From the NCBI GenBank assembly GCA_021613535.1, contig CP075494.1, positions 13,330,001 through 13,394,000 on the forward strand: a stretch of DNA of 64,000 nucleotides, given 5' to 3'. Below the pieces are notes generated by a model, which saw only the letters and a list, made by a program, of their open reading frames with translations, did not search any database and was not told where the DNA came from. Positions 6,549 to 55,465 of the stretch are shown here, piece by piece (position 1 is the stretch's first letter; each line of letters starts with the position of its first letter). The DNA is from Adineta vaga. Lineage: Eukaryota > Animalia > Rotifera. The position numbers and the translations under genes are program-made.

Positions 6549-7702
6549 ATGATCGCAATCAATAATGACGACAGTGATGATGATGATGAACCTTTCTTTC
6601 GTGTACATTTCGTCCCAGATAAATCAATTCCAATCAAATTTGGTTATTGGGAAGAATATAATCGATTAAAAAAATCTTGGACACGTTATTGTTTGAATTG
6701 TACGAGAAAGGTTTGTAAAGCATCAGGAAGTTTATGTCGATATCATTACAATAAAGAAAACAAAACAAAATCTCAAAAGATGAAGAAAAAAACCAAACGT
6801 CTAGATACAAAAACAAAAAATAGAAAAAAACAAACATCTCCATTCGAAACAAATCATGATATTCAGGTATGACGTTTCTATGAATATATATGATTGATCT
6901 TCGTAAATTTTATTATTTATAGATAGAAAATATTCATAAAGATGAAAATGATAATATAAATGAATCATTGGGAATCGTCATTTCTATTGCATCATCTTTG
7001 AATAGAAAACAAATAGTAAGTAAAACAATCACTTTCAATCTTTTGAATACGAAGAATTTGACAACAAAAACTTTCTTCTAGGCTCAAATCAAAATGTTTA
7101 TTAAGAAATTTCATACTACCTCTCATCCTGTTCAATTTACATGTGAATCTCACCCTGATTATGTTGATAATACTACAACTCATGTGATAACAAATGATTG
7201 CGGATCTTTCACAACCGTTCTATCGAAAGAAATCATTCAGGCATGTATTCATCATATATTTGTTAGTTCAATTCAATGGATCATTTCTTCGATCGAACAA
7301 TCAACGATTCTCGATCATTTTCCTTACGAAATTTTACGTGTTAAATGTGCAATAAAAAATTCCCGTGGTATAAAACAATGTCGTTTTGATAATTTACCTG
7401 TCTTTCCATCATCCTATGTTATATCTGTTGAATGTCATTCAGGTGTTAGATCAATGAAAATGACACGAAATGAATTAGTTGAAATTGTCGAATTATCCGG
7501 TGCTACTTTATATCCTGATCATAATCAAGATCAATCATTAATTGTTTTATGTAATTCGAAAAAAGAAATGTTGAATGTCAAACAACATAATAATGAATTA
7601 TTGACAACGAATGAAAGAACGATCTATTACTGTAAACCAGAATTTCTATTTGATTCAATTGTTAGACATGAAGTACAGACTATTGATGATTATTATTGGT
7701 GA
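6549..7702 (+). CDS. Paralogous CCCH-zinc-finger (C-x2-C-x11-C-x2-H) plus tandem BRCT protein, 3 exons
   Basis: Exons ~6549-6867, 6923-7015 and 7082-7702. Finger CLNCTRKVCKASGSLCRYH. BRCT segments TTHVIT...IFVSSIQWIISSI and ELVEIVELSGA...CKPEFLFDSIV align with the upstream gene. Confidence 0.75.
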
Positions 7703-10594: not shown

Positions 10595-13297
10595 ATGAAC
10601 AGTAAAAACAAGCAGCAAACGCCAACAAAAACCGATAAATTTTATAATAATCCATTGTACAGATTACTTTCGAATCGAACATTGAATTCAAATGAACTTT
10701 TAGAACAACTCAATTCATTACTCCACGAACAACCTGATCTAGTCGAGTTTACACATCCAAAAGAAGGATCTTATTTTCATGTTGTTTGTCACAATTTCAA
10801 TCGACAAGAGAAGTAAACTATTTATTTCGTTGATTTCAATCAATTGTGATTCTTTTCTTTTACGTTTAGTATTGCTTACAGAATAATCTATGCATTGAGC
10901 AATGCTGGTGGTGATCCAAATGTAACAGATAAAAAAGGTAACACAGCATTACATGAAGTTATTAAAGAAGGATTATTCAATAACAATTTTGATTTAATTC
11001 AAGTATGAAACATCTCTCAATTGATAGAATTTATATATGTTCGATTTAGGCATTGTTTCGTATTGGTATCGATCCACGTATTGTAAATCGTGATGGTAAA
11101 ACAGCAAGTGATTATATTAAAAATAAACCTCAATTAACAACTTTTTACAATGCTTACGGTGAAGGTATTTGGGATGCAATTGAAATGAATGATTTGAAAG
11201 AAACTCAACGATTAATGAATGGTAAATATCGAAGAATAGTGAACTTTTTCTATCAAAATAAAAACATATTTTTTAGGTTTTATTAAAGTTGATTGTAAAC
11301 ATAATTCAAATAAGACTTTATTAGATAAAGCTCGTGATCTAAATTCAACATTCATGATTGATGTTCTTGCTGATTATCAAGTAACAACTGAATTTGTTCA
11401 TTCAATATTAGCATTCGATTGGGATCGAGCAAGTCTAATTTATGAACATGAAAAAGAATTTTTCAAACCAAATTCAATGGATTCAATTCATCGATTAACT
11501 TCTCTTCGACAATATTCAAAATCATTGTTAGATTATTGTCTTGAAAGTCAATGTTCGAAACCATTTGAAATTTTATTTCATTCGCCATTAATTTCAATCA
11601 ATGTGAATATCTTATGTACTGATGGTTTACCATTTTTCTTTCATTGTTTTCAATCGTTCATATCGAAAGATATTCGTAATAATATTCTATTAAATTCCAA
11701 TATGTTAACAAAATCATCCAAAGGTGAAACATTTCTCTTTCATCTAATTCATTTATATTCTCTAAATACCAATCCGGACTATATTCATCTTTTCAAAAAC
11801 ATCATAATCAACAATCCATTACTTATTGCACAACGAAATGAAGATGAACGAACTATAGTTGAAGTAATCGAATTGAGTACATCAATGAATTTATACAGTA
11901 AATTACGACCATTCTATGATGCAATCAAACATTTAATAGTTTTACAATTGAAAAATGATTCTGTTATTGAACAATTAATTTTAAATTCTTTTGGTTATGA
12001 TTTAATTATTTTCTGTCGAAATAAAACATTCTTAATGACAAAATATGTTTATCGATTATTGCGTAATTTAAAATTACAACATGGTCTAACTGTATGGATA
12101 TCAAGTTTTCTTCGAGCTGTTGCGACAAATGATTTAATGAAAATTGAATATATTTTAAAATTAAAATCTAATATTTATCTTGCAAACGATTCATTCGGAA
12201 GAACTTGTGCACATGTAGCAGTCCTTCATCAACAACATGATATTTTGAAGTAAGCAAAATCGATGAGATTTCAATTCGTAACTCAGTGAAATAGTCGAGT
12301 GTATAAAAGAAACTTGTCTGTTACTAAGCATCGCTAATGTTTATCACTTCATTGATATATCATGTAAATTATTCCATTTGTACTCAAAATAGAGTTTTAA
12401 CAAAATGAACTCAATTGAATATTTTTAGATTCTTTGCTGAAAAATATCCGAATGTAATCAATTCAAAAGATAATATGAATCGAACATGTTTTCATTATGC
12501 TTGTTTGATGAATGATATGAAATCGATTGAAATTCTTGAACAAATTCAAGCTATTCAAGTAGGAAATTAGGAAATTCTTTTGCATAGATTTTCTTCAACT
12601 TATTTTTTAGTCGATTGATGGTTTAAATTTTACTCCGAATGATTATTTATTGAATCATAAATTATGTTTCAAAGAATTTTATATCGATGATTTTTCCAAA
12701 GTTGAATTACAACGAAAATCATTGGCAATGAGTAATTTCTTAAAGATTGTTTTTTATCCAAGTTTAAAAAAAGCAATTGAAACAAGTTCGATCGAGGATA
12801 TAAAATTACTTAATAGTGATTTAACGAAAATGGGTTGTCATTTGAAAGATTTCAATCCAATTTCTCAATCAAATGATTTTGTACAAGGTCAACGATATAT
12901 TCCATTTCTATTTGTTGGACTTGAACATCGAGCTATATTAGCAATCAAATGTTTATTACAATTAGGTTTACCATTCGTCGGAAAAATTTATATGATGAGA
13001 AATCAATTAAATCAATATTTTCTATCGAAATATTTTTCTTTGCGACCAGATATACTTCAGTGTTTTGATATTGTGGAATTGATCGATGGTATTAATGATG
13101 ATGATGAATTAAAAGATGCATTTAAACAAGAATTACCATCGACAGAAACAGGAACGAATGGAACTTTGGTAAAAATCGAACATGAACATCGAATGAAATT
13201 AAAAATATTAGCAAGAAGACAAATGATCTTAGCCAATCTAATAAATGGAGATAAAAAAACTGACATTAATAATTCAAAATCGTGTGTTATACTTTGA
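10595..13297 (+). CDS. Multi-exon ankyrin-repeat protein with C-terminal CaaX box (CVIL)
   Basis: Ankyrin motifs GDPNVTDKKGNTALHE, DPRIVNRDGKTASDY, DSFGRTCAHVAV and KDNMNRTCFHYAC. Ends ...SKSCVIL*. Confidence 0.8.
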
Positions 13298-13756: not shown

Positions 13757-15354
13757 TTACGATCGTATACATTGAGTATTGTCGGTTAGTTCATGTGGAC
13801 AATCAACTTTTTTGAATGTCATTGATGGATTATCAGCATTTTGAAACCATTGAAAACGCCAATAACAACCAGGTCTTAAGACAGCTGGTAAATTTTCACA
13901 TTGTCCTATGCTGCTAACACCACCATATCTTGCACCCCATAGATCTATATTAGTAATTCCAAATTGTCTTGAACAACCATCGAACAAACCAAGACCACCA
14001 CCAGGCATTTGAAGATCAAAATGATTGTTACCAAGATCACCACCTGTATTTGTTACTTGAACCATCATTTTCTTACCAGTAACAGGTCCAGATGTAAATG
14101 TTAATAAATAGCAAGCACAACACCAATCTGATTCACCTTGGTTCTATAGAAAACAGAACAAAAATGTATTACTGTTTAATAAGAACTTCTTTTTGCCTCT
14201 TACACTTATGTGAGCAGCAGCATAACCGAATGAGAAAGTTGAATTAACACTCCATGGTTGTTGATTATTACACATAGAAGATTCACCACCATCGCAAACC
14301 GATACAGCGTTAGCGTCGATTGAATCAACACCATTTTTTTTACATGATTGAACCGGACTTGATACAGAAGCTTTGCCTGGCCATGCACAGCTGGCTTTAC
14401 AACAATCCCAATAACGAGTGGTAACACCAGCTTGTTCATTACCATTGTTTGCTTGTGTTGACGAGGATGAAGATGATGATGATGAACCAGCAGAACTACT
14501 GGTAGTAGATGGTGGAGTTGCGGTTGGATTTCCATTCGGTAAACATTGATAATAGTAGTCATTTAAATAATTACATGCAGATCCATCGCAACATGTTGTT
14601 GAACCATAATAATTTATGCCACCACATTGTTGATACATAACAACGCAATTTTCTAAAAATCAAATTAAACAGTTTATTTATTAAACTATGGTTCTGTACT
14701 TACGATTTGCTGCGCTGCTAGAGCTTGTTGTACTCTGAGTAGTCGTTGTGGTACTTTGAGTGGTAGTTGCGGTGCTTTGAGTTGTAGTCGTGGTACTTTG
14801 AGTGGTAGTTGCGGTGCTTTGAGTTGTAGTCGTGGTACTTTGAGTGGTAGTTGTAGTGCTTTGGGTTGTTGTTGTTGTTGTAGTTGTTGTATCAGGTAAA
14901 CATTGTGAATAATAGGGATTAGAGACGATACATGCTGAATCGATACAGCATGTAGCTCCTCCCCAATTTTGACCACCACATTGACTGTAGACGGTATTAC
15001 AACCTATTTATATTTATTACTACGTTGAATAGAACAATAATTTCTTATCATTATTACCTTGATTGGCGGTGGTAGTGCTTGTTGTTGTTGTGGTGGTGCT
15101 GATAGTGGATGCCGTTGTTCCTTGTAAACATTGATGATACCAAGGGTTAAGTTCTGTACATGTCAATGAATCGCAACATGATGTATCACCAGAATAATTG
15201 ATACCACCACATTGATTCCATTCAGCTACACATGGTACTATAGAATAGAATCATAAATGCTGAGTATTTCAAATAGGTTTGATATATTATGTTTCTTACT
15301 TGTTTTCGGTAAATTGGAAAATCCAATGAGTAATATAAGAACAAATTTTAACAT
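13757..15354 (-). CDS. Secreted GH45 endo-1,4-beta-glucanase with three N-terminal CBM1 modules and Thr/Ser linkers (fungal-type)
   Basis: Signal peptide [13 protein letters not shown]. Three CBM1 modules: WNQCGG..YHQCL, YSQCGG..YYSQCL, YQQCGG..YYYQCL. GH45 motifs [23 protein letters not shown] and [22 protein letters not shown], with both catalytic Asp present. Five exons. Confidence 0.96.
14736..14890 (-). repeat. 21-nt tandem repeat (42-nt higher order) encoding a [14 protein letters not shown] linker
   Basis: Repeated gtactttgagtggtagttgcggtgctttgagttgtagtcgtg units inside the cellulase exon 3. Confidence 0.9.
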
Positions 15355-21261: not shown

Positions 21262-23723
21262 ATGCCATTGAACATTTTTCTAATCTTTTTTCTTCTTACT
21301 CCAATATTGTCAATTAATCTTCTTGATTTATGCCAATCAGGAATTCGTGATGATGGTTCAAATTATGTTCATTGTGCACGAAAATCACTTTCGGAAATTC
21401 CACATTTTTCATCCCATCGTTTATTTAATTTAGCATTTGATGAACTTATTCTTTCGGATAATGCTATCACACATATTCATGCGAATGCCTTCAATGGTTT
21501 ACGTATTAAACGTTTAATTATGTCCGGTAATCGTTTAAAATCTATTGATAAAAATGCCTTTCGAGAATTGGAAAATTATCTGGAACAATTAACATTAGAA
21601 TTTGATCCATCAATTGTTGATACAATACCTGAAGCAATTCAAACAAATCTTGCAAATATACGAAGTTTAACATTAACTGGATTGAATCTACGAAATTTAC
21701 CAGTCAATGTTTTTGAACAAATGAAAAAATTAGAAATTCTATCATTAAAATCTTGTAATTTACAAACAATTGAATCGGATGCATTTCATTCAATTGAAAA
21801 ACAATTAAGACATCTTTATTTAGATTATAATCAACTTGATTATCGAATATCAAATGTTATGAAACATTTAACAACATTAGAAACATTATCTATATCACAT
21901 AATCGTCTTAATCAATATGAATTGAAATTAATCAATAAAAATCTTCGATATTTAGATTTATCTTATAATGGTTTAGCAAAATTATTCTTAGCAAATATGT
22001 CCAATTTACAAATTTTAAATGTACAAAATAATCTTCTAACATCCGAACAAATTATTGGTTCAATACCTAATCAATTAAAAGAATTAATATTAGATTTTAA
22101 TTCTATTCGAACATTTAATGGAAATTTTCTTATCGAAAATAATTCATTAGAAACTTTATCTTTACAAAGTAATGATTTTTTATTGAATTATTCATCAATA
22201 TTTCAACATTTAAATAATCTTAAACGATTAAATCTAGCTAGAAATAATATTCAAACAATACCAAAAGGTAAATATCTTCTCTCTTCGAGAATTGACAGAA
22301 AGGAAGGAAGGAAGAGACTTGTAAATACAGACAAATCAAGATAGACATTGTTATTTTCTTTCTTTTTCTTTTTCAAATAGGTTTATTTAATTTTACTCGT
22401 TCACTTGAACATTTAAATATGGATCGTAATCCATTACTACCATTATCAATTGATACATTCATTGGTATTGAATTATCTTTACGTAATATTAGTTTTCAAT
22501 CATGTTCATTAACATCAAATTCTTTACCAGCATTTTCTCGTTTGATTAATCTTGAACGTTTAAAACTTCAATCAAATTTATTAATTGATATTCAACCTAA
22601 TACTTTCTTTTCATCAATGTCACAACTTATTGCAATTGATTTACAACGTAATCAATTGACACATATTCCATCAGAATTTCCTTCATCATTACGTGAATTA
22701 GAATTAGGAAATAATCATCTAACAATTTTACCATTTACGAATCAAACATTTCAACAACTATCTCAATTAATTACATTAGATTTGAATTCAAATCCATTAC
22801 AATGTGATTGTCAAATCAAACCATTATATCATTGGTTATTAACACATTTTCAATCTGAATTAGTTCCTTATGTACAATGGATATGTGCACAACCTAAAGA
22901 ACTTTCTGGTAAACAATTAGGTTCCTTAGCAGAAAAACAATTGAAATGTGAAGAGATTCAAACAACAACAACAACAACAACAACAGTAGAATTTAGTACT
23001 CAAGTAACAACTGAAATGGAATTGTTTCCTTCATTTAATGTTTGGTTAAAAGATTCAGAAACAGCTATTCTTGAATGGTCCTATGTATCAAGTCCATTGA
23101 AATTAATTGTACATGAAAATGGTTATAAATTACCAATACTCGTTTTAAATTCCAGTGAAAGTTATTTTCTTTTGGAAAAATTGAAATCATCGACAAATTA
23201 TACTTTATGTCTTCAAATAAAACAACAAAATTTATGTCGAGATTTACAAACACCATTGAAATCTCCTCGACAAAAAGTATTATCTCTCTCTTCTTCATCA
23301 AATTCATTTGAAAAACCATCATTGATGAATGATATTCAATATCTAATCACCGGTATTGCTTGTGGAATTATCGTTGTATTACTTATTCTTCTCTTAGTTG
23401 TTATCTTTCTCATTAAATATCGTACAAAATTTCCTCATCATCATTCATCAAAAACAATTGCTACTGATTCTTTCTATCAAACAACTGGTTCTGATACAAC
23501 ACAAATAGGTGGATCGTGTTCGATTGAAGACCGTTCAACAAATGGAAGTACAAATCAACCATCATCATTAACACCGATGTTTTATTATTGTCGTTCACCA
23601 CCGATTTCGACTTGTTGTCAAGAACAACAACCATATCATTTCTATCATGAAATTCCTTTTACGACATCATCGACTCAGTTACATCCACCGCCATGTCTAT
23701 GCAGGCCACCTATGATAATTTAA
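21262..23723 (+). CDS. Type I transmembrane LRR protein (signal peptide, LRRs, LRRCT, FN3-like domain, TM helix, cytoplasmic tail)
   Basis: Many LxxLxLxxNxL repeats, LRRCT NPLQCDCQIKPL...C, FN3-like LKSSTNYTLCL, and TM segment ITGIACGIIVVLLILLLVVIFLI. One phase-1 intron at 22268-22380. Confidence 0.9.
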
Positions 23724-24899
23724 ATTTTCATTTTGTTGTTTTCTGTTTTTCGAACAGTTGTTTTTCTTTTGTCTTCACTAGTCAGATATGCGCCGTACAT
23801 TTTTGTTATTTTTCGTGCTTCACTCAAAGAACATCATTATGTGTCTTATCGATTGAAAAATATCTCATTAAATCGTGTCAATTTTTACACATTTATCTCT
23901 CTCTGTACATATATACAATGTGTGAAATCATTTGTAAGCAAATGGTGAACTAGATTGAATGGAAGAAGAAGATAGGACAGATGACAGATGGATGAATTGA
24001 AAGACATTTGATGAGAAAGATATGTGCAATCGAGCATGATGATGATGATGCACCATATGTGATTCAAAGTTTATATGAACAATTTGTTTCAAATTTGTTG
24101 TTGATTGAATGATGATATTCACAGCAATGATAATTTTTGTCATGAGAATATTATATCACTGACAAATTAGTACGTGTTAGAGAAATTTTAACTAATTGTT
24201 CAAGAACAAATGAAACTATGGATACAAATGACTGAATTATTATGGTGACGCAGATACACTAATTCATCTTGAAGAATCGAAGCTTTCCATGAAACTATGA
24301 TAATAGATTTATTGCTATCAAATAATTATATTGACATTGGAGATTCAATGAGGTTTAACTGTTTTTCTAAAAATGTGTTTCGTTTACTGATCAACTATAA
24401 TTTTATTGTGTGAGATGGGTGTGTTTTTGCAACGAAAATATTGTATGACTCAAACAGCAGTCACTGTCGAACAATTTTACTGCATAAAATATCTTTGACG
24501 ATAATTACTGTTTTTCTTTTCATTTCGTTTATTTTTTGCATTCATGCGTTACCAATGACGCGTGTCCGTGGATAAGATTTAGTAAAGAAAAGAAAGATAA
24601 AACGAGAAAATTTTTCTTTTCGCGCAGTAGCCATAACCAAACTCATACGTTTAGTAATAATCGGGATGAGAGGATAATATTATCAATAGGTTTGTAGTTA
24701 AATGCAGTAAGTAAGTTTGTGATATTTTCATATAATAGAGATAAATTCAATCAAGTTTTGTGGCGGATGAGAGTCGGAGAAGACAGATGTACTTGTATCA
24801 TTATAATTGAGATAAATATATTCAGATCTTTTATTTTATAGATATCAACAAAGTGATCTAAACCTATCTTCCGATGCATAATCACAAAAAGTGATATTC

Positions 24900-27800
24900 A
24901 TGGCATACAGTCGTATCATTGACAAAACGTTTTTAGATGTTCATAACGTTACTTGCAGTTTATCCGATGAATATCAGAGTCTACCGATTCTTCAATTAGA
25001 AGATGCAGTACAACCGATAAAATCAATTATTCCTGGTATTTTCGATCATGTTTCTACAGCTAGACAGAAGTCTATTGGAGATTCAATTTTAACGTGGAAC
25101 GAATCGGCAGCTATACGTCTTTACACAATGCCATCAGCAATATCCACTCCTTTGAATAAAATACTTCAAAATGAAAATCGAAACGTTCGAAAGCCATGGT
25201 TGGCCTACTTAAAATTACTCATAAGTGCTTTCGAGAAATTACCATGGACTGAGTCTATTACTGCATGGCGTGGAGTTAATTGTGATTATACTTTGACATT
25301 CGTCGAAAATGATGTGCAGGTCTGGTGGGGTATAACTTCTTGTTCGAAGAACCCTAATCGCGTTGAAGCCTTTTTAGGCGACAAAGGTACTTTGTTTGTG
25401 ATTGAAAAATGCTGTGGAAAAGATATATCCGCTTATTCAGCAGTGAAGGATGAACAAGAAGTTATTCTCATGCCTGGAACTCGCGTGCGTTGGAAATATG
25501 ACACTCTACAAATCGCCGACCAACATTTCATTCTTCATTTGGAAGAAGTAAATCCTCAACGGTACGTTCATGAAATAGTTGCTAATTTCGCATACCAAAA
25601 AGCAGCATTAAAGTCGAAAATATCCGATCTTTCGAAGTTGCAAGTTTTTGATGATATCATGCAGTTCGTTCAGTAATATTTGTGTATAAAATAGGAAATC
25701 GATTATAGTGATAAATCTTGTACACAAGAGAGAGGAAGAAGTTTAGGATATGCTTAATCAATTTATATAAAAAATAAGCTAGAAAGCCGTTGATTTTTAA
25801 AAACTCCTGTATAATTTTATTACATTTTAGCAGTGTTCCGAAATCAGAATCAAGTGGTCTGTGTCTACAACTCAAACAAGAATATCTACAAAACAATCGT
25901 ATTGAACTTATTATGAATCCGTCCAGATCTTTTTCAATCGGAGACACATATATCAACTTGACTATCGTGGAAATAAAAGAGCAACAGGAAAAAGAAAAGA
26001 AACTCTTGGATACGAAAGATAATGGTGAAATAATTAACATTTTTGAAGAAATCTATAGTATGAAGAATACGATTGAAGTCAAAGACGTTTTTGCACGATG
26101 TACAGAAGATACGAAAAGAATACTTGTGCTTGGACCTGCTGGAATAGGAAAAACTACATTTTGTCGATATGTTGCTCACCAATGGGCAACTGGTAAACTT
26201 TGGCAACAGTATCAGTTACTTGTTTTTATTCGATTACGTTCCTTAACATCAAATCGTTATCCTTCGAATCGCAGCTACTTGCCAATCGATCTTGTTGAAA
26301 GAGAGTACTTTCCATGTGATCCATTATCAGAAAAACTTCGTGACGAGTTTAAAGAATACTATGACAAAGAACAAGTGTTATGGATCTTAGATGGGTACGA
26401 TGAATTTGTGCAAAATATTCCTGAGCAACTGAAAGATGTATTTGATCATATATACACAAAACAACATCATATTTTGACATCTCGACCATTTTTAATCAAC
26501 CTAACATATAATACTCAACTCGAAATTGTCGGCTTCACAGATAATAATATCAAGGAATATATAAATAAATTTTTCAATCAAATCAACGATCAATTAGATA
26601 ATGCACAGTTGAAAGTCGAAAATTTGCAGAGATTTTTGCAACTAAATCCACGAATGTGGGGTATTTCACATATACCAGTAATTCTAGAACTAATGTGTAG
26701 TCTTTGGTGTGATACTGATTGGTCAGAAACTACAAGTTTGACAATGACAGTTGTGTATGATAAGATGACAGAATGGGTGTGTCGAAGATATTTAGAAAAG
26801 CTAAATAAATGCTCAAGTCAAATGACAAAAGAAGATGTTTATAATTTCTGTAATAAAGAATTAGCATTCCTCGAGAGTTTAGCTTTTTCAGGCATACAGA
26901 GTGGTGACATTGTCATTCGTCCAAAAGTACTACGAGCAGCGATAAAAGAGTCTGGTTACTCTTCACAAGATGGATTGTGTTCGTTAAATATCGGAATATT
27001 AAAATCTTTGGACTATAAAGCGATTGGAACTCGCATCGAAACAGACAAAACTCATTACTTCGTTCATCTCAGTTTTCAAGAACATTTTGCAGCACGATAC
27101 TTGTTGAGAGCTCTCTGTGGTACTGAATGCACTCAGAAAAAAGCGACAGATTTCATCAAAACCCACAAATACAATCAACGCTTTGAACTAGTGCTCAATT
27201 TCGCATGTGGCCTTGTTACTGATAGCAACAATGAACAATTGACAAAAATGTTTTGGGATACGTTACTAGGAAAGCCATTGGATCTTATCGGTTACAGACA
27301 TGCACAACTTCTTATCACATGCTTCGAAGAGGTTGAATGTGTTAGTAACTTTCCCTGGTATCGTGAATTGGTGAAGTTGATAATAAAATGGATCGATTAT
27401 TATATACGCAAAGAACATCATCATCCGGAACATCCTTTAGCACCTTTACTTAGAAGAAGTCCGTCATTAGTAAATCAATCCGACTTGCTCGATGCATTCA
27501 CGAAACTGATTAAATCCTCAGATCCAATGATAAAGGAAAGGACATCTCGTTTATTATCTGATTTACCAATTACATATCCATCATTTGACTTGATTAACGC
27601 ACAACTAGAAGCTTTGAAAAACAGCAATGAGAACGTCAAGAAGGGTGCATGTGGATTTTTCGAAAATATCCACGGAAAATTCGTAACTAAAGATTTAATT
27701 GACATTCTCATGTTTGTGTTCACCGATGCGAACTCTCATTTTACTGTGAAACACTGTGCATTTCTAGCTCTTCTCAAAATAAGTGAGAAAGTGAGTATTG

Positions 27801-30694
27801 ATATGATGATTAATACATTGATGGTCTATATGGGAAGTATTGACAATGCGGTCAGTCACGATGCATACAAGCTTTTTGGAATATTGATTCGGAACACGGC
27901 TATCGATGAAGTGGTTCGTAAGCTACTTAATCTACTTAATGATGTAGATCTTGATAGAAAACGCGGAGCCAGTAAAGCACTTAGTCAGATGGATATTCTA
28001 ACTGTTTCCAATGAACTTCTACATGCAGTTCTATCTATCATGGACCATAAAGATGATTTGATAAGAACTAACGCATTTCAAGCTCTCGAAAAGCTAGCTA
28101 AAAATGTGTCAGACGCCCAAGTAGTTAACAAACTTCTTCATGCACTTGATGATCCAGTCGACGAGATTCGACGTATCGTGTGTTCCACTCTCAGTGCTAT
28201 GGGACAAACAACAGCAAGCGAAAAGATAATATCTCGGCTTGCGATTGCTGTTAAAGACACAAATATTTTTGTAAAAAGTGCTGCTTGTCGAGCTCTCGGC
28301 GAAATTGGTCAGAAAGTGGCAACTCGCGATGTGGTCAATAACTTAACAACTGCACTTGACGATAAGAATGATATAGTCATCTGTAGTGCCTGCCAAAGTA
28401 TAGGGAAATTGGGAGAGAGAGCAGCGACGGATGAAGTAATTAGTAAGCTGGCCAACATACTTAGAAATGGTACAACTTTTGTGAAGTATAGTGCATGCGA
28501 GACGGTGTCTAAAATGGGACACAAATCAAGGACTGATGAAATAATCAATGAACTTGTCAATGTGCTTGGAGACGAGGATTCTACTGTTCGAGCAAGTGCA
28601 TACAGGACTCTTGCGCAAATATGCGGGGAAACTGTGAACAGTATCGTGATTTATGCAGTAATGCGAGGACTTGCAAGTTCAGATGATTTTATTTGTGAAA
28701 AAGCCTGTGCAGGCCTTCAAGAGATTAGCACAAAAATGCCAAACAACGAACTTTTTCAAGTACTAAGTGTACCAATGCAGCATAAAAACAGCAATATAAG
28801 ACAAATCGCATGCGACACTCTGCTAAAAGCATCAAAATCACGACCAACAAACGAAACCATCGATATTTTGAATCGATTCTTAGAAGCCCCCTATGCTGAT
28901 GTTAGAATCAGGGTATCTCTTATTCTTATAGATATAGACAAACACTCAATAACTCCTGTAGTAATCAGTGGACTGATCGAAGCACTTAAAGATCCATCGG
29001 AAACCGTTAGACAGAATGGAATTAAAGCTCTCATGTCTATAGATCAACAGTTCATAACCGCTGAAATAGTTACTGCATTCGTTCATGCGCTCAATGATAC
29101 ATCGTCAGACGTCAGATGGCAAGCGATTGGTGCTCTGAAATCCAAAGATAAACAGTTGATAACCGCTAAAATAGTTGCTGTATTCTTTGCTACGCTCAAT
29201 GATCCATCGTCAGACGTCAGATTTGAATCAATTAGAGCTCTTAGATTCATAGGTCAACAGTTTATGACAGTTGACATGATTGCTGCATTCGTTGCTGCGC
29301 TCATTGATCCATCGTCAGACGTCAGATCGCAAGCGATTGGTGCTCTTAGATCCATAGATCAACAGTTGATAACCGCTGAAATATTCGCTGTATTCGGTGA
29401 TGCACTCAATGATCCATCGTCAAACGTTAGATGTGAATCAATTAGAGCTCTTAGATTCATAGGTCAAAAGTTTATAACAGCTGACATCGTTGCTGCATTC
29501 GTTGCTGTACTCAATGATTCATCGTCAGACGTCAGATTGCAAGCGATTGGAGCTCTTAGATCCATAGATCAACAGTTTATAAAAGCGGAAATAGTTACTA
29601 CATTCGTTGATGCGCTCAATGATCCATCGTCAAACGTCAGATGGCAAGCAATTAAAGCTCTTAGGTCCATAGATCAACAGTTTATAACAGCTGACATCGT
29701 TGCTGCATTCGTTGCTGGGCTCAGTGATCCATCGTCAACCGTCAGATGTGAAGCAATTGAAGCTCTTCGATCCATAGATGAACAGTTCATAACAGCTGAC
29801 ATCGTTGCTGCATTCGTTGCTGGGCTCAGTGATCCATCATCAGACGTCAGACAAGAAGCAATTAAAGCTCTGAGATCCATAGACAAAGACCGGATAACCA
29901 CTGAAGTATTCAAAAAAGCGCTTTGTACACAAGAAGATACAGAGGAGCGTATTGAGTGGAGTGTGCGTTATGTTGTCAATCGCAAAACGGACCGAACAGC
30001 AATGACTGAAATTATCGATTTACTGAATAATGCATTAAAAAGCTCAAATGGTCATATCAGGTTGAATGCATGTCGAGTATTAAAAGAAGCTAATATTGAG
30101 GCGGCAACGACTGCAGTAATTGTTACACTCGTCATGTTACTGAAAGATCCTATTAGGGATATAAAATTGAATGTCTGCAAAATTCTGAGTCGTATGAATG
30201 CGGTTCCTTCAATTAATGAAGTTCTTGATACGTTGTTAGATGTGTACTGTGATGACCCTGATGTTGAATTTACGGTGTCTGAAACAATCAGTACTCTCCA
30301 AGCTTCTCTAACAGATTTATCAAACCTAAAGTCTCATACGGTTAGCAAATTGCCGGTATGCATAGAGAAACTTGAATGGGAAGCTTTAAGGAAATGGCCT
30401 CCAGAACAATTGATAGAGACGTTTTTTAATACAGAAATGGAGTTTTGGCTTCCCATCATTGAAAGGATTTTCATTATTCACCAATATGGCGTTTCTATTG
30501 ACGAAAGTAACATTACAGTATATGGTCGAGGAGAACCTATCAAAATGTCTTTTAAAAATGTACGACTTTGTCATAGAATGATGGACTATTTTACTCGAGA
30601 AATCGATGATGAATCCCTCAACAGCACAAATATGAAACAAAATCACCAAACAGATGTCGTAACACCTCACGACCGCTTACTCGCTGCTTCCTGA
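24900..30694 (+). CDS. NLR-like protein: mono-ADP-ribosyltransferase (ARTC/R-S-E type) + NACHT NTPase + HEAT repeats, about 1840 aa, 2 coding exons
   Basis: Exon 1 has AAIRLYT, AWRG, ITSCS and DEQEVIL. Intron 25562-25830 (CG|gtacgt...ttttag|C) joins the exons in frame. Exon 2 has Walker A GPAGIGKTT, Walker B VLWILDGYDE, ILTSRP, IPVILE and WHD motif YFVHLSFQEHFAA, followed by HEAT repeats. Confidence 0.9.
28991..29900 (+). repeat. 105-nt (35-aa) near-identical tandem HEAT repeat array, 8 full units plus a partial ninth
   Basis: Unit starts (gat[c/a/t]catc) at 28991, 29096, 29201, 29306, 29411, 29516, 29621, 29726 and 29831. Consensus DPSSDVRx[Q/E][A/S]IxALRSIDQQFITAxIVAAFVxALN. Confidence 0.95.
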
Positions 30695-34708: not shown

Positions 34709-36456
34709 TCATCCAAATATTGATGAATAATCTATTTCTGCACAAGGAAAATATTCTTGTAAAATATTCGACGGTTCTGATTTCCCACATAAATATAATT
34801 TATTAATTTTAGTACAATTATTTCGTGTAATATCTCTTGTGAAATTATGTGTTACTCGTTGTAAAGATTCATATTTGATATAAAGAGTAAAATTATTTAA
34901 TAAAGATGTATTAGAATCAAATAGAAATTGTTCAATATAATTATCGTGAACATTAATAATACTAAGTTGATAAAGAAAAGAATATATAATACGATTGTTT
35001 TTTGAACGATAAGATTGTTTACGAAGCTGCGGTTTATAATTAATCACAGATAATTTTTCCAAATATGGAAAAGATTTCTGAATTTCAAAGAAAAATTCAT
35101 GTTCAAAAGATTTTTCATCAACCAATGATATTACACGAACAGTTTTAAATAATCCACCTGGAAAGTTATTTGAAATATAACCGTAATATATCATTCTAGG
35201 TGGATATGAATAAACATGACATAAGCTTTCTTTTGCCTCTAGAAAATGATCAACATAAGAAATTATTTGATTATTTGGAAAATCAATAAATGTTCGTTGA
35301 ATATCTTCTGTTGATAATAAATTCATTTCATTATCAATAGAGACTAATGATCTAATATAAAATGAAAATACATTTAACAATGGCATCGAATAAATAATAT
35401 CTTTTTTTAAATCATTTCCATCAAGGAATTTTTTCAGATGCGATACTGGAACATACAAACCGAGTTGTTCTAAATTTGACATTCGATATAGAAGTGATAG
35501 AATTATTTCGTCATAACATAATGTTGCATGAAGAGATGAAAGCGAAAAGCACTTTAGATGTGGCAAATTATCCTAAAAAAACGAAATGTTTTCTAACAGA
35601 TAGCTTTTCTCATAACTGACTTGATTTTGTATGACGTTTGACCAACGCATGTGAACTAAATCAATATGAAGTGTGTGAAGTTGATTAAAACGACCATCGA
35701 GAAGAATAAGACAATCATCAAAACATTGTAATTTAATATCTAATTTCAGAAGAGTTGAAGAACGAAACGTAGACGGTAGATTCTCAATAGATAATAGAAA
35801 ACGTCCCGCATACGATGATTGATGTAATATTAAACAATTTAAACTGGTAAAAGTAACCAAGATATAATGAAATATATTCATAAACGTCAATAACATATCA
35901 TGGTAATCTTCACCATTGTCATTATCAAATGTAATTAATAGTTTTGTAATCTGATTTTCGAGAATGCCACATGAAAACTCTTCATCTAAACAAAAGATAT
36001 TCAATGATTCAACAATTTACATGAATCTTCTATTTGTTTGGAAAAACAATTCAACTGCAATATCTTACCAATAAAAAGAGATCGAATACAATCTTCATTA
36101 ATATTATAAATACTAAGACAATGTATATTTGGATAATGAGCAGCACGTAAAACATGTTTCATAGATGATGAATGAAGATCAAGTCGTTTGACTTTATCGC
36201 AAATTTTAGGTAAAATTTTTTGACAAATTCGATCAAGTATTGTATGACAAGAAAGCAAATCGATAAATTTATTTGGGAGCCATTTGATGAAACTCAAATG
36301 ATTTGTAAAAGTTGAATCATAAATAATTGTATTTAATCGCTGATTGACATTCTGTAAAGAATAAAGTACATCGAAAGTGCTTAATTTTTCAAAAATAATC
36401 ATAAGAATTTCATCTGGTAATTCATTTAAACCAATGTATGATTGTTTCATGCTCAT
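34709..36456 (-). CDS. F-box/LRR protein of a lineage-expanded family, 3 exons
   Basis: LNELPDEILMIIFEKL F-box, then family motifs CLILLDGRFNQLHTL, ISNNFPGGLF, SFEHEFF..I.KSFP and LQRVTHNFTR. Confidence 0.88.
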
Positions 36457-39116: not shown

Positions 39117-40525
39117 CTAAGTAGTGGTATTTGTAGTTAATAGTCGTTCATTTTCAAGCGTATCTGTTGTTATTGCGGTTGAATTCGTTTCAATTCTAAT
39201 CTTTTGATTATCATTTGAATTGACTTTTAACGTAACACCTCTCATCGGTTGTTGTTTACGTTGAATAGCATTAAAAGCTGCATTTTTCCCAGTTTGACTT
39301 GTATCATTTCCATTTTGTTTTGTCAAATGATTTGATATAAGTTTTGAACATGTTAAAAATTGTTGAAATGCTTTTCGAAATGGTTCTGATAAGAAAGCAT
39401 ATAAGATTGGATTAACACATGCAGATATATACACAAGACTTTGAGCAACAATAGCAAATAAGATTGTTACTTTATTATGATGTGTATGTATTAAATAGAT
39501 TTGCATTGGTGTCCAACAGATGATAAAAGATGATATAACAGCAGATACCATTTTTGTTACACGTTTTTTACCTTTTGCAACTTGTTGACCTTTCGCATTT
39601 TTACGTAAAACATTGATAATCAAACCATAGAGTATAACAATAATGATTAATGGAACAATTAAACCAAATAATGCAAAAAAATAAGCTGTTACTCGACGTG
39701 CCGTATTTAAAAATGGTTTATCAGCACGAAATAAACAAACTCGAACATCCGCAGTTGTATCAACTAGTAATACATCGTAATAAAACCTTCAAGAAAGAAA
39801 AGAATACAAAAAACTAATCTATTCAATATTTGCAAAGCTTACATATTCGGTGAAGCAAATATAATTCCAATTAACCAAACAAAAATGACGGCTAAATGTG
39901 CATTACGTTCTATTCGATATTTCGTTGATTTAACAGCGAAAACAACGCCAAGAAATCGATCAACAGACATTAAAACAAGAATATAAATACTAACATATGC
40001 ACTTAAATACATCAATGTATTTGCTAATTTACATAGAAGACTTGGAAAATTGTATGAATGAACAACATAAACATAGATCGTATGTGGTATACACATGAGA
40101 ACAAAAGATAAATTTGCAATTGCTAAATGTAAAATCAATGCATTTGTTGTATTACGCATTTGTTTAACTGTAACAACAGTTAGAATGACAAGAATATTTC
40201 CAATAGTACCAATGACAAAAACAAGTGAATAGAGTGGGATTATGAGATAGAGAAGATAATCAGATGCTTCATCATCAGTTGATAAATTTTCAGGAGAAGT
40301 TGTCGTATAATTGAAAAGAGTTGAATTGGATAAGGTTGTTTCGTTTGTTGACATGGTATTGAAATTATTAAGAAGATATTCAAGTGAATAATAACGCCAA
40401 TTAGGATGCGAAGATGAATATGAATATTGCTGTAGATCAGATGACGAGACACCGGGCAGAAGACGAGATAGTTGATATGATGATCCATGTGGATTGGTTG
40501 AAGAATAATCGATCTCGCCGAACAT
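39117..40525 (-). CDS. Allatostatin-A/galanin receptor-like class A neuropeptide GPCR, 2 coding exons
   Basis: GTIGNILV, MRNTTNALILHLA, LVLMSVDRFLGVV, KKRVTKMV...CWTP and SACVNPILYAFLSEPFRKAF. Intron ~39788-39842. Confidence 0.9.
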
Positions 40526-43500
40526 ATCCAAATTTGAAGGAACGATGAATTAATTCTTTAGAAAAAAGAAAACATCGATCAATCAAATTGCTTTTCCCAT
40601 GAGTCATTATAGTTATCTCAAAGAGTGAATATCAATCAACTGATTGATTTAGATTGATCAAAGATAATTGTATACATAATGATTAGAATTTTTATTTCGA
40701 TATTTAACAAATCGTCAGGGAAAAGAGAAAATATTTCTTATCACATCGACATTAAAATTCATTGCAATTGTTTGGTTTTCTTTCTCCGTTCTCTTTCTTC
40801 AAAAGAGTAACAATAGTTTTCTTTGTTCGATGTAGTCAAAATAGTACTCTTATTGATAGTTAACTAAATGAATTCTTAGCAATACGGAGTCTTTTAACCG
40901 TCATGTAGTCTCTCTATGACTTAGTTTTTCTTTTCTATCCGAAAGACGAAAACGATCGAACGAGACATGTGCCGGAAAATAGTTTGCCTCTTAGAATTAA
41001 TTATCCGCAATGGATACGAGTCGATTAAATCGTGTGATACTTTGTCAACGAACTAAATATGAGTATCATTGATTTTCGTCGAAAAATAACATCTTCTCGT
41101 TCGTTATTTTCGAAATATTTATGTACATATAAATGTTTGTTTTTTTCGATAGAACGATCGAAAAACATACTTCTCACGTCAACATATCTCTTGAGAAAAT
41201 ATCTAACGATTAGTTCGTTGTTATTGACGTTGAACGGAAGTCTCATTTGGCTCGAATATGATTTGAATTTATAGCAAGACGGATGAAAGCGGCAAGAGAA
41301 AAAAGAAACGGATTAGAAGATACATTTAGTCTAACTGTGATCGTGATATAACTTAAAATAATCAATACCTACTTGTGAATAACTTTATGTTTGATGAGTG
41401 TAAAAGAAAAAAAGAAAAATAGGATATTTTTCTTATCTATCTCACTACTCCACCCACACATGAGATATGAAATATTGATTGGACAGAATAATGAAGAAAT
41501 AGAAGATGATGATGTAGAATCACATATGTTTTTAATCGATCTATTAGTCCATCGAACTAAAAACGATCGTTTCCATTCATTTGATTATTCAATAGATTTA
41601 TCTAATCTACCTGACAAATCAATATGCTATTATTATTTTTCTCGAATAAACATAACTACGAATCATTTGACAGAATCATTCATCTCTTTCCATTCATATA
41701 CGTTTCCAAAAGAGTAATCAACTGAATAGATTCAATGATTTTTATTAAAATAAGAACTAAAGGAAAAACAAACGATAGAAATGAAACAAAGCATCTCCAG
41801 ACATATTGTTTTGTATTCAAATACTATGATTTGTTATTCAAAGAAGCCGACAAATCAGTGATATTTTTCTTCGTACTAATGAAGATAATTAGAAGACAGA
41901 ACATCATTTCTTTAACATTCCTTTTCCTGTCATTATTACCAATAAGCTTCTTCGAAACATAGCCCTAGGAATAACATCATATGTCTCTTATTTCTACATG
42001 ATCGCTAAATTAGCTCATATTTCTATTCAGACGTGAATATATGATCTTCTGGAAGATGCTAACGAGAGTAGAAAAAAAAAGTAGATTAATGAGTAAAAAT
42101 AAACAATACATCGAATGGATGAGATATCTTTGGATATGTTTATGTATGATTAACGTACCCGATGCCATCCTTGGTTATTTTTGCGTGAACGTTTTTGTGT
42201 TATTGAGATACTTGTTGTCAATCGTTCGCAAATGTGTTGTGAAGACTTGTGCGGCGATAGATAGATATATATATATATGTGCGGGCGTACGAACAAAGCT
42301 CAAGAGTCTTGGAAAGTTGTCAACATTAAGTGGAGGAAGCAATCACGAGAAGACGAGCAGAAGACTTTTTGCTTCTGCTTTTCACTTTCTCTTATTTCTC
42401 TGTCTTTTTTTTCTGTTGAATTTCTAATATAGAGAGATATTGCTAGTAGAAAGAACAATACTTCTCGGAGTTTTTCTCTCTCGTCCGACAAAAAATACAA
42501 ATACATCAGACGTCAAATAGTGAAGTGCATAGCTTTCTTCTTCCTCTTCTTCTTCTTCTCCTCCTTTTTCACTGAAGTCTTGTATTACATTTGTTAGTTT
42601 TTTGTTTTGTTACTAAAGAATGTCAAATATGCATAGTCAAAACACTCGACTTGTCTCATTAATAAGACAGCTTCTTAGGTTTTCATATGTCTTTAGTTTT
42701 GCTAACAATCACATTACTTGTTTTGTCTCAATAGGAGTCAAACTAATGAAAACATGATGGAAATCAGTAATTGAAAACATGTCGAAGTTGGTTTTTTTTC
42801 TAGTCAAGAAGATTTCTATAAGTATTTTCCATGTGACACATATGTTTTATTTCAAACGTCAAAAAATATGAACGAACAAATAAAGAAATATATGTTTGTT
42901 AACATCCTTACGGCTATTTTTTAGTTTAGTGTCGAACAATGAAACGACAAATTTAAATATCCTCAATTTAATGGAATAAAATGTTACAGATCGGAAATAG
43001 TTTTAAATGAACGAAGAAACCTGTTTTTTTTTATTATTATCTCAACGGAACCAACGGCTTAAAGGCAAATATGTAAAATTTCACAGATTTCGAAAATAAG
43101 AACTCGAGATGTTAAGCAAACATTCTCCGAAACAGTTCGATGTATGTGAATAACTGAATTATTTTTAAATTTAATCAGATCGCACAAGTATTTTGTTGTA
43201 CTTATTAATCTTCAGAAATACGAAAATCACGATCGTCTGTCAGATAAATGTTCATTAACACCGAAAAATCAATATGAATTTTTCTTTTTTTCCGATCACA
43301 TCAACACTTTTACTGTTCTCTGTTAGATTCGATGATTTCCTTCAAAAATACATCTATCTCTCTCCTAAACAACTTTTAATCTCATTAGAAAAGAAAAACA
43401 GAACATAATCCATTTATAATTAGATTCTATATCAAAAACCAACTGCCTTACATACATAAAAATAGATCATATTAGTCAATTACAACTCTATTGTGTCATT

Positions 43501-49229: not shown

Positions 49230-50099
49230 TTAAGCAAGACGAAAATCTTCCAAATCGCTACGTGGTAAGACATTTAATGAAAATTGATTTGGAAAATTAC
49301 CCGGTGGATAATAAAGTGCAACACCGTACCTAAAATAAAACAGATATTCTCTTCTGAATAGAAAATAAGACAAAGATATTTACCATTGTTTTTTATCTTC
49401 TGTTTGGCAACGACCAAAACCAACTTCTTTTGTATTTTTCCAAACAAGTTGTGAAAAATGAAGACTATTCTCTTGTAAATCACTATTGAAATCATGTCGT
49501 CGAACTTCGCGATACCACATTTCAGTCATACGATCACCTCGAAGAATTGGACCAATAAAATAAGCAAGACTTTCACCTAAAACTGAACCTTGATAACGTC
49601 GCCATTGATCAGGACTATGTTTAAGTTCATTTAATCGTGCTAATTCACGTGCCCAATCACCTGCCGCTTTATTCAAATATTCATTTGCTGTCAATGGTGC
49701 AACACCATGTTGTATACGATATTGATTATGTTCCATTAAAGCTTCAATAGCAAATTTTCCATCATCATAATCTTCAATATCTAATGGATTATCTATTCCA
49801 TCTTGTTTATTTTGTTCAACAGGAACGAAGACACTTTGTTGTGGTTTTGTAATACCCCAATCTTTATTGTATAAACGTTTGTCTCCTGTTTTCGGATCAA
49901 TTTGATTTAATCTTCGATGATGACAGAAATAATAAATGATGGCTCCATTAACAGCAATTAAAGCAACGACAGCAAGACAAAGAATTAACCAAACATACCA
50001 ATAATATTGAAAGAAAGCAGTGACTTGATCAGCTGAATTCAATTGACCAAGACCAGTAAAGAAGTTTTGAATATCACCAAAGACATTATTTTGACTCAT
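49230..50099 (-). CDS. CAP/SCP-domain (GLIPR2/GAPR-1-like) protein with N-terminal transmembrane helix, 2 exons
   Basis: TM segment YVWLILCLAVVALIAVNGAIIYYF, then HNQYRIQHG, GESLA, WYRE and HFSQLVWKNTKEVGFG. Last exon WYGVALYYPPGN. Confidence 0.9.
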
Positions 50100-52947: not shown

Positions 52948-53720
52948 GATTAAATCTTATGTTATACTAAATAATCGAAATAGGGGTATTAATATAAATG
53001 AGATCGCTCAAGCATATTACGCGTATTATAGAGTACACAAATATGATGGATTTCTTTTGTAGAAGAAATTTAAAAGTTAATCAAGCGAATATATTGTTAT
53101 TTAGAAAATTGTTTTGTTAGAAAGGTGTATAGATGTTCGTTTGATCCGAACTACGTATAAATGATTTATGATATAATTTCAAATATTTTTTACCTATCTA
53201 TATATGAATCATATATGCAAACAAATCTCTAAATATCTATTTTTTATTGTGCGTAGTATTGTAGTCATATGATATGATTGATTTTGATTTACAAATGAAT
53301 TTACTCCTCAAAAGTTTAACAAAAAAAATATATAAATCATTTTAAAAAGAATTAACAATGATTCAGTCTATAGCAAATCGACTTGGATTTTACGAAATGA
53401 ACAAAATATCTAATCTAAAAGATTAAACATAAATTGTCTTCTATCATAGAAGAGGACGCTAGTATCCGTTTTCTTTCGTTCAACTGTTGTCCGTTCGTTC
53501 ATTATCCATCCACCCACATACATATACAAGCTCTCTATGTATTTCATCCCCAATGATGATTTTTCTTTTTTTCTCTCTCTCTGATTATGATCACGATCAG
53601 TCAAGAGATGGAAGAAAAGTCTTAACGAATATTTTCTTTAATCTTGTCATTCTATTCAATAGAAACTCATTTATTAATTGTTCTCGCTTCTCTTTTTCTC
53701 TTCTTCAAAAAGACAATAAA

Positions 53721-55465
53721 ATGATGTCAATACCATTTATGGATCAATCAGTTACATCAATTGCATCTTCATCTACACATTTCGATCTCATATCTCATCG
53801 TCCATCACATTCACCAGCTTCGACATCATCCTTACCTGTATGGAAATCATATTTATACAATTTACAAATGCAAGCACCAAAACCAATTCCAATCATATGC
53901 CGAACATCTCAACCACGTCGTCCAAAACAATATGGTTTAGAATTTCATGGTCTTCTATCACGTACAGATGCCGATCAATTAATGTCAACATCAACTGATG
54001 GTTCATATCTTGTTCGTGAATCATTAAATCCACCAAATTCTTATACATTAGCAATAAAATTTAATAATGAAGTGAAAAATTATAAGTTATTTTTCGATTT
54101 ACAAACATCCACACATTATGTGGGTGAAAAACATTTCGATACATTGAATGATCTCGTACATGATGGATTAATCTCATTTTATTTGGAATCAAAAGCAAGT
54201 GATTATATTGCTCTAATGGCATGTGATTCGCAATGTTATACAAATGAAAGTCCATACGGACAATATAAAGCACAATTATTACATCGTGCACAAACACAAA
54301 ATAATAATTTCAATTCAAATGACAATCATGTATGAATACGAAGAATACATTGTTCAAATTCTTTCTTTTGATTATTTTTTCTTATAGGATTCACCAATAA
54401 ATCGTTCTATAACACAGAATCAACCACAAATTGATCAAACGAATTTAAATTATCTTTCACCATCACTACGCAATCCATCAACTGTTCAACAACGTTCATC
54501 ATCGATAATAAATTCTACACCAATGAATCCTAGTCAAAAATTTCCAGCATCAAATCCATTATTCTTTGATCGAATTCTTATAATGCAAGCAGAAAAAGGA
54601 CATAATTTCAAAATGTATTCATTTAAAGGACCACATTGGTGTGATTATTGTGCTAATTTTCTTTGGGGTTTAGTACAGCAAGGTGTCAAATGTGCTGATT
54701 GCGGGTTTGAAGCACATAAACGATGTTCAGAAAAAGTTCCACAAGATTGTGTAAGAGTTTTTCTTTTTGCATGACGCGCTTAGTAAGACTACTTGAACTG
54801 ATAATGTAATACGATTTTTATTCTTTTAGGTACCACAAATGAAATATTTAAAATCAATTTTTGGTGTTGATTTAACAACGTTAATTAAAGCAACAACTCC
54901 AGCTTTATCAGCTGCTTCTCTAACACCAGTCGTATTAGAAAAATGTATTAATGAAATTGAATCACGTCCACATGCACTTGATACTGAAGGTCTCTATCGA
55001 ATTGCTGGCTTTTCTGATACAGTTGAAGAAATCAAATTAGCATTCGAACGTGATTGTGATCATGTTGATCTTTCTCAAGAACGTTATCCTGATATTCATG
55101 CCATTAGTTGTTTATTGAAATTATATTTAAGACAATTACCCATCCCCCTTGTAACATTTGATATACATAGTCAATTACTTGAACTTCGTCCATCTGCTCT
55201 ATGTGTAACAACAGTTCGTCCAATTATTCGTCGTTTACCACCAGCTCATTTTCATACATTAAGATATTTATGTGAACATCTATTAACTGTTTCTCAACAT
55301 TCAATGCAAAATCAAATGACAATTGAAAATTTAGCTATTGTATTTGCACCAACAATTATGCGATCAGAAAATCCCGATCCAATGATTGGATTAAAAAATT
55401 CGAAATCAATTCAACGTCTACTAGAAATTATCATCGAACAAGTACACGATATCTTTGCTGCTTGA
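53721..55465 (+). CDS. CHN: Chimaerin (SH2-C1-RhoGAP), 3 exons
   Basis: [17 protein letters not shown]2 FHGLLSR...GSYLVRES, C1 [17 protein letters not shown], Rho[13 protein letters not shown] and [12 protein letters not shown]. Confidence 0.95.

Follow-up and report, generated by a model that had tools for sequence, protein, structure and literature searches.

A homogenised HEAT-repeat array with variable residues on its predicted concave face in an NLR-like ART-NACHT-HEAT gene of the bdelloid rotifer Adineta vaga

Described systems and the rotifer gene

Fungal NLRs of high internal conservation (HIC), among them Podospora HET-D/HET-E/NWD and others carrying ANK or TPR repeats, share with the A. 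vaga gene described here an effector-NACHT-repeat layout with homogenised repeats (PMC4986451, PMC13449251); the two also have in common changes in repeat number and order, exchange between paralogues, and positively selected concave-face residues, the face being predicted in the rotifer. The rotifer gene differs from the fungal ones in its animal host, its 35-aa HEAT units, an ART effector on a separate exon, and an identity below 85% in copy A; moreover, allele length polymorphism and a function in cell death or recognition are described for the fungal proteins and would be predictions for the rotifer gene. HIC-NLRs have been reported in animals, plants, and bacteria in a cross-kingdom survey from which HEAT repeats were excluded (PMC13449251).

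A second close comparison is with the alphaRep binders and their natural PBS-lyase HEAT parents (PMC3754942, PMC4613692), which have the same two-helix unit and register as the rotifer arrays, and in which the six positions that were randomised are the six most variable in the rotifer arrays. The alphaRep units are engineered, 31 aa long, and have been shown to bind, whereas the rotifer units are natural, 35 aa long, attached to a NACHT domain, and predicted to bind. Bacterial and archaeal NACHT-HEAT STAND proteins share NACHT together with HEAT_2/HEAT_PBS, form the nearest look-alike clusters after Rotifera, and several are internally conserved, but they are only about 25-32% identical to the rotifer gene over the array; PADLOC returned no strong match for the rotifer gene, only a weak hit. 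Animal NLRs (vertebrate NLR-LRR; coral NACHT-WD40/LRR and NB-ARC-TPR; PMC10236652) have in common with it a NACHT with an NLRC4-like HD2 and combinatorial N-termini, the rotifer gene carrying HEAT repeats in place of their LRR, WD40, or TPR. In corals tandem duplication of whole genes predominates, with little conversion (PMC10236652), whereas in the rotifer it is the repeats within the gene that turn over.

The principle is thus known from fungi and reported for animals, and we found no description of a HEAT version in bdelloids, which appears to be new: our literature search, thin on subscription journals, returned no account of bdelloid NACHT-HEAT receptors or of animal HEAT receptors of this kind.

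The host gene and its array

The window, by which we mean the whole 64,000-nt stretch of A. vaga DNA analysed, contains the array within an intact, spliced ART-NACHT-HEAT (NLR-like) gene on the plus strand, which we searched exon by exon, each separately. Exon 1 (24900..25561) encodes an intact ADP-ribosyltransferase effector domain (Pfam ART, 1e-7; rat ecto-ART2, 5.6e-6); its translation can be aligned to rat ART2 and has the motifs of the R-S-E (ARTC) type, Arg, Ser-x-Ser, and Glu-x-Glu, at R124, S147/S149, and E185-x-E187, which by sequence would place it in that class. A 269-nt phase 2 GT-AG intron (25562..25830) joins this exon in frame to the NACHT-HEAT part; two runs that we take, as a guess, to be RNA (X2 and X16) yield contigs with the corresponding spliced joint, which is absent from the DNA runs, and both parts are present in the NCBI model, a hypothetical A. 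vaga protein 1850 aa long. Contigs of both this gene (copy A) and its paralogue (copy B) occur in the probable RNA runs, and the gene is therefore probably expressed. Contigs from two DNA runs are missing over 24850-25446, most of the ART exon, which both RNA-like runs cover; filtered records leave such holes.

Exon 2 (25831..30694) is an uninterrupted open frame of 1634 codons that runs from NACHT through helical domains and a HEAT solenoid to the stop codon (Pfam NACHT, NLRC4_HD2, HEAT_2). The NACHT NTPase (26117..26578; Pfam 1.9e-16) has Walker A at 26132-26155 and Walker B at 26381-26404, and past it lies a winged-helix F-x-H-x-S-F-Q-E motif at 27059-27082. A central NACHT with these three motifs intact, combined in a single protein with an effector at the N-terminus and superstructure-forming repeats at the C-terminus, is the layout of NLR-like STAND proteins of the NACHT class, to which the gene would belong on its motifs. 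The open frames and a dN/dS of 0.015/0.044 in NACHT between the paralogues rule out a pseudogene.

About 14 divergent, unhomogenised 35-aa HEAT repeats (27500..28981; Pfam HEAT; lag-105 identity 0.38-0.53 over 27900-28950) lead into the homogenised array of nine 105-nt units (28982..29890), and the last divergent repeats follow, with a C-terminal cap (29891..30694) typical of the family, similar C-termini being found in paralogues and homologues. The original prediction had described nine similar units with divergent HEAT repeats on either side, and this description holds: TRF reports a single 105-nt array (29020-29883; 8.2 copies, 81% matches, zero indels), and identity at a lag of 105 nt is 0.76-0.85 within the array vs 0.26-0.53 in the flanking repeats. 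The units start in frame at 28982, 29087, 29192, 29297, 29402, 29507, 29612, 29717, and 29822; units 1 and 9 are edge units, unit 9 conforming for only about 22 codons, and units 2-8 have a mean nucleotide identity of 83% (range 76-90%). The 210-nt alternation that had been noticed is also present, extending over units 2-7, with 10-16 nt differences at lag 2 vs 16-25 nt at lag 1.

By the fungal HiC threshold of at least 85% over at least 100 aa (Dyrka 2014), array A falls short, with a self-identity of 76% over 100 aa, and paralogue B passes at 100%; by the Psim threshold of 0.7 (Ament-Velasquez and Saupe 2026) both lie above, at 0.78 for units 1-8 of array A and 0.87 for B, where Psim was calculated here as identity to consensus rather than with T-REKS.

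Within the units, the most variable codons are those at unit positions 11 (29012 + 105n) and 15 (29024 + 105n). The residues following VR (Q,W,F,S,C,L,W,C,Q) and those four further on (K,G,R,G,R,G,K,E,K) are in all nine units exactly as the prediction gave them. Its picture of a few hypervariable positions stands only in part: positions 11 and 15 do vary most, but eight others (1, 3, 8, 12, 28, 32, 34, and 35) vary too, and over whole units pN is close to pS (0.171 vs 0.165, units 2-8). A diversity-generating retroelement can be rejected as the source, since codon 11 varies as T/G/C at its second and third positions, with no adenine bias and no template.

Repeat turnover between paralogues A and B

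The sole other genomic match to the array is the coding array of paralogue B, an ART-NACHT-HEAT gene with 20 homogenised units on the minus strand (L006:1747-9265; G000:C5, about 13260247-13267765), which lies about 93 kb upstream of A in inverted orientation and is about 5% diverged from it (160 differences in the 3147 nt before the array). In the protein database no closer relative of the array was found than the gene itself. Comparing repeat number and order with a paralogue was among the checks proposed for the array, and it is informative: A has nine units and B 20, in different order. In B, units B3-B8 differ from one another by 0-2 nt, B15-16 and B17-18 form an identical 210-nt block, and B9-11 differ from B12-14 at 5 of 315 nt; judged by these identities, one, two, and three units at a time have recently been duplicated in frame.

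Exchange between the copies has left two traces. The region of unit 8 (29696..29779) differs from B15/B17 by 3 nt and has exact matches of 76-78 nt to several B units, consistent with a transfer of repeats between the paralogues. Further downstream, a tract of 446 nt (29854..30299) is identical in A and B against a background divergence of about 5%, as expected of recent gene conversion. This tract appears as one contig at the summed depth of A and B in two DNA runs (64 vs 33+31; 480 vs 238+254), which identifies it as a real conversion tract and not an assembly collapse. As read from these alignments, copying, conversion, and in-frame reshuffling of units have taken place inside the gene, and units have also passed between it and the paralogue 93 kb away, so that the gain, loss, and shuffling of repeats and the inter-paralogue exchange that mark the fungal HIC genes appear to have their counterparts here.

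Beyond the array, synonymous divergence between A and B ranges from 0 to 0.24 along exon 2, the NACHT regions are about 97-98% identical, the ART exons are 74% identical (123 of 222 aligned positions at the protein level), and introns and flanks do not align. The overall pattern would fit an old duplication followed by repeated, patchy conversion; the difference between the ART and NACHT identities is accounted for either by an old duplication with conversion restricted to exon 2 or by swapping of effector exons. In a four-gamete test 23% of site pairs were incompatible, and no significant decay of recombination with distance was seen among these pairs (p=0.83).

The read data bear on both copies. 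Contigs without a mismatch to A, and others with exactly the differences of B, were found in four studies, and in four runs, probably of one lab strain, only A and B appear in short-read contigs. No third allele is seen among the 40 read differences listed for these runs (142 more were counted), all 40 being those of B. Depth over unit 8 is at least 12x the single-gene depth, as expected from the expansion in B. Short-read contigs confirm the order of units from unit 1 to about half of unit 3 only, with zero differences (28892-29253). A read joint of 29000-29736 looked like an allele with seven units deleted, and was rejected as such because it matches paralogue unit B1 instead. No wild copy turned up in metagenomes, whether these were scanned by protein or by DNA pattern.

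Variation and selection at the predicted binding face

AlphaFold2, run on the single sequence, models the array as a solenoid of helical hairpins (mean pLDDT 77) in which unit position 7 begins a helix, and Foldseek matched PP2A-A and alphaRep proteins. Alignment to alphaRep chains places unit positions 7, 8, 11, 12, 15, and 19 at alphaRep positions 18, 19, 22, 23, 26, and 30, which are those randomised in that library (PMC3754942) and which lie on the concave face of helix 2, the target-binding surface in co-crystals (PMC4613692). The two variable sites, 11 and 15, correspond to alphaRep 22 and 26. The expectation that the variable residues would lie on one face of the solenoid is in this sense borne out: by helix register and by analogy with the alphaRep crystal structures, they are predicted to sit on helix B where it lines the concave binding face of such solenoids. 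Array A has exceptions, since position 7 is constant in units 2-9 and position 19 is only S or F.

The per-codon comparison of amino-acid and synonymous change that had been suggested for the array supports the same positions. In array A, pN/pS is 1.9 at the six positions vs 0.65 elsewhere, highest at positions 11 and 15 (3.0 and 2.7), with some helix-A positions also near 1.5. A fixed-site codon model gives omega 2.17 for the six sites (p=0.014), and the M1a-M2a comparison picks position 11 (p=0.023). We also used the DNA of eight family genes, from which ten other arrays were tested: tree-free pN/pS is 1.4-3.9 at the six positions vs 0.44-0.73 elsewhere, and omega is significantly above 1 in nine of the ten (p<0.05), with an LRT of at least 12.6 in six. 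Significance is not reached by paralogue B on its own (omega 1.27, p=0.49) or when A and B are pooled (p=0.14). The codon test is a simplified custom implementation in which multinucleotide changes may inflate omega, and the six-site set, although taken from the alphaRep literature, was fixed after the protein-level variability had been seen. In simulations with a neutral face, gene conversion, and matching identity, the LRT of array A was reached in 0-3% of runs and a value of 12.6 in 0 of 296. On these data, an excess of amino-acid change at the face positions has moderate support in array A and strong support across the family, which would agree with the positive selection at a few concave-face positions known from the HIC genes, with the face predicted here.

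We consider it fairly probable that the array acts as the diversifying segment within the sensor domain of a STAND protein of NLR type, subject to concerted evolution of the fungal het-e kind, with immune activation suggested by analogy; a concerted-evolution sensor of this type, family-wide in bdelloids, is the best reading of the data. Unequal exchange or replication slippage, together with ectopic conversion, would keep the framework of the units uniform and recombine face residues into new surfaces, which would be favoured by selection for binding to changing foreign (or guarded host) proteins. Ligand binding could then lead to NACHT oligomerisation and switch on the N-terminal ADP-ribosyltransferase, as for the death effectors of fungal HIC-NLRs; the ligand, the activation, and the immune role are all extrapolated from STAND/NLR biology. 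The original prediction of a het-like diversifying strategy is in this way upheld with respect to the NLR-like host, the concerted evolution, the reshuffling and exchange, the predicted-face variation, and the amino-acid excess, but HEAT repeats are not new to the strategy, given the one Podospora NACHT-HEAT gene with internally conserved repeats (PMC13449251).

The main alternative, which we regard as unlikely, is neutral turnover, in which slippage or expansion during DNA repair is tolerated in a solenoid and exposed residues are merely unconstrained; the gene may still be a receptor, but its array would contribute no specificity under selection. Several observations would sit well with it: the near equality of pN and pS over the array, the recent expansion of B to 20 units without significant selection, the many DNA breaks that bdelloids repair (PMC8494291), and the fact that natural HEAT-PBS repeats vary at these positions anyway, which was the basis of the alphaRep design. 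It does not, however, predict omega above 1 at a predefined face both here and in nine of ten other arrays, beyond what conversion-only simulations produce, nor that positions 27, 28, 31, and 32 on the other helix should average only 0.1-0.6 across the family arrays.

We think it improbable that diversifying selection is real but directed at a partner other than a pathogen, such as self/non-self, a selfish element, or a fast-evolving host complex. The sequence signature leaves the ligand unspecified, fungal HET-E/HET-D act in allorecognition (PMC13449251), and the terms NACHT and NLR are absent from a study of bdelloid infection (PMC11258130); against these points, the occurrence of ART, TIR, and ankyrin before a shared NACHT-HEAT core is the kind of combinatorial arrangement that defence STAND proteins typically show. 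At 7 h in A. vaga infected by a fungus, the horizontally acquired genes that are down-regulated are enriched for ART annotations, a result that concerns the class of 431 such A. vaga genes as a whole rather than this gene in particular (PMC11258130, Supplementary Data 3). That the array is an assembly artefact, or that two alleles were set next to each other as A and B, is highly implausible and was rejected, for although false palindromes occurred in an earlier assembly of the species (PMC8494291) and A and B are inverted, at equal depth, and with no third variant seen, the A-perfect and B-specific contigs of four studies, two open frames, ART exons only 74% identical and unrelated, unalignable introns and flanks (vs a mean allelic divergence of 1.7%), and a depth over unit 8 that fits the expansion of B all speak against it.

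The bdelloid family and neighbouring genes

The A. vaga genome contains seven closely related NACHT-HEAT genes, whose N-termini are ART or TIR-like, among at least 19 NACHT matches above the Pfam cut-off. An orthologue in A. ricciae groups with A and B (tree support 1.0) and has seven units of the same type that are unhomogenised, with a mutual identity of 27%, so the homogenised state is lineage-specific. Close relatives of the NACHT region number at least 207; all that carry a name are from bdelloids (Adineta, Rotaria, Didymodactylos), and the metagenomic ones are presumed to be bdelloid as well. Among the best 120 of these homologues, 23 have a self-identity of at least 85% over 100 aa and 62 of at least 75%; by a similar though not identical measure, Dyrka et al. 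reported values above 85% for 16% of fungal NLR repeats and 0.8% of metazoan ones (PMC4986451). In 54 homogenised arrays from 39 family proteins, the six alphaRep positions are the six most variable (mean pairwise difference 0.57-0.70; next 0.46). The homogenised state is scattered on the NACHT tree (29 changes over 116 tips), and ART, TIR, and ankyrin domains alternate before the shared NACHT-HEAT core; many of the family sequences come from short-read assemblies, and their unit counts may be wrong.

Taking these observations together, we tentatively propose, while giving it somewhat less than an even chance, that bdelloids possess a family-wide natural 'alphaRep library', in which NACHT-HEAT receptors with ART, TIR, and other effectors might rebuild their binding surfaces by in-frame shuffling and ectopic conversion and so yield heritable recognition variants among clones without outcrossing, keeping pace with parasites. 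It is a standing question how bdelloids, which have no regular sex, hold out against coevolving parasites, and descriptions of their recognition receptors are scarce. This locus offers a concrete, testable mechanism: the units of the two genes can be counted, the codons of the predicted face are defined, the conversion tract can be seen directly, and the host is a laboratory species for which long-read genomes exist and a fungal pathogen is known. Natural variation here gathers at the six sites chosen by protein engineers for randomisation in alphaRep binders. A. vaga recombines between homologous chromosomes (PMC8494291), so a special link to asexuality is at this point hypothetical.

Several other family members have features of their own. 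A TIR-like-NACHT-HEAT paralogue (L012:5097-5773) contains a duplicated block of 315 nt (three units) at 84% identity, and three others (L008, L009, and L010) have canonical, less homogenised repeats, with a 21-copy 105-nt array at 67% matches in L010. In an ART-NACHT-HEAT paralogue on the minus strand (L011; G000:C2, about 15.63 Mb), the HEAT region is spread over three open frames, reflecting either frameshifts, short introns, or assembly errors. The bdelloid homologues P0063, P0065, P0094, P0096, P0113, P0116, and P0161 carry additional ankyrin, TPR, or ART and TIR domains. Outside the rotifers, the HEAT-repeat proteins P0006, P0015, P0016, P0020, P0024, and P0028, one fungal and one cyanobacterial, have self-identities above 80%, and most have a NACHT domain.

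The remaining genes in the window include ordinary neighbours with BRCT (7094-7702), ankyrin (11354-12253), F-box (36001-36456), rhodopsin-type GPCR (39839-40531), CAP (49380-50099), SH2 (53487-54335), and flavin amine oxidase (58467-59795) domains. Just upstream of the ART exon, two LRR open frames (21262-23723) with weak LRRCT and fibronectin-III matches probably encode a surface LRR protein. On the minus strand, a 285-aa open frame (34709-35566) has a weak match to Pox_A22 (RuvC-like resolvase; E=0.009). A GH45 cellulase with a fungal-type CBM1, also on the minus strand (14144-14875), adjoins a 21/42-nt tandem repeat that is probably a linker, and is a candidate for horizontal acquisition.
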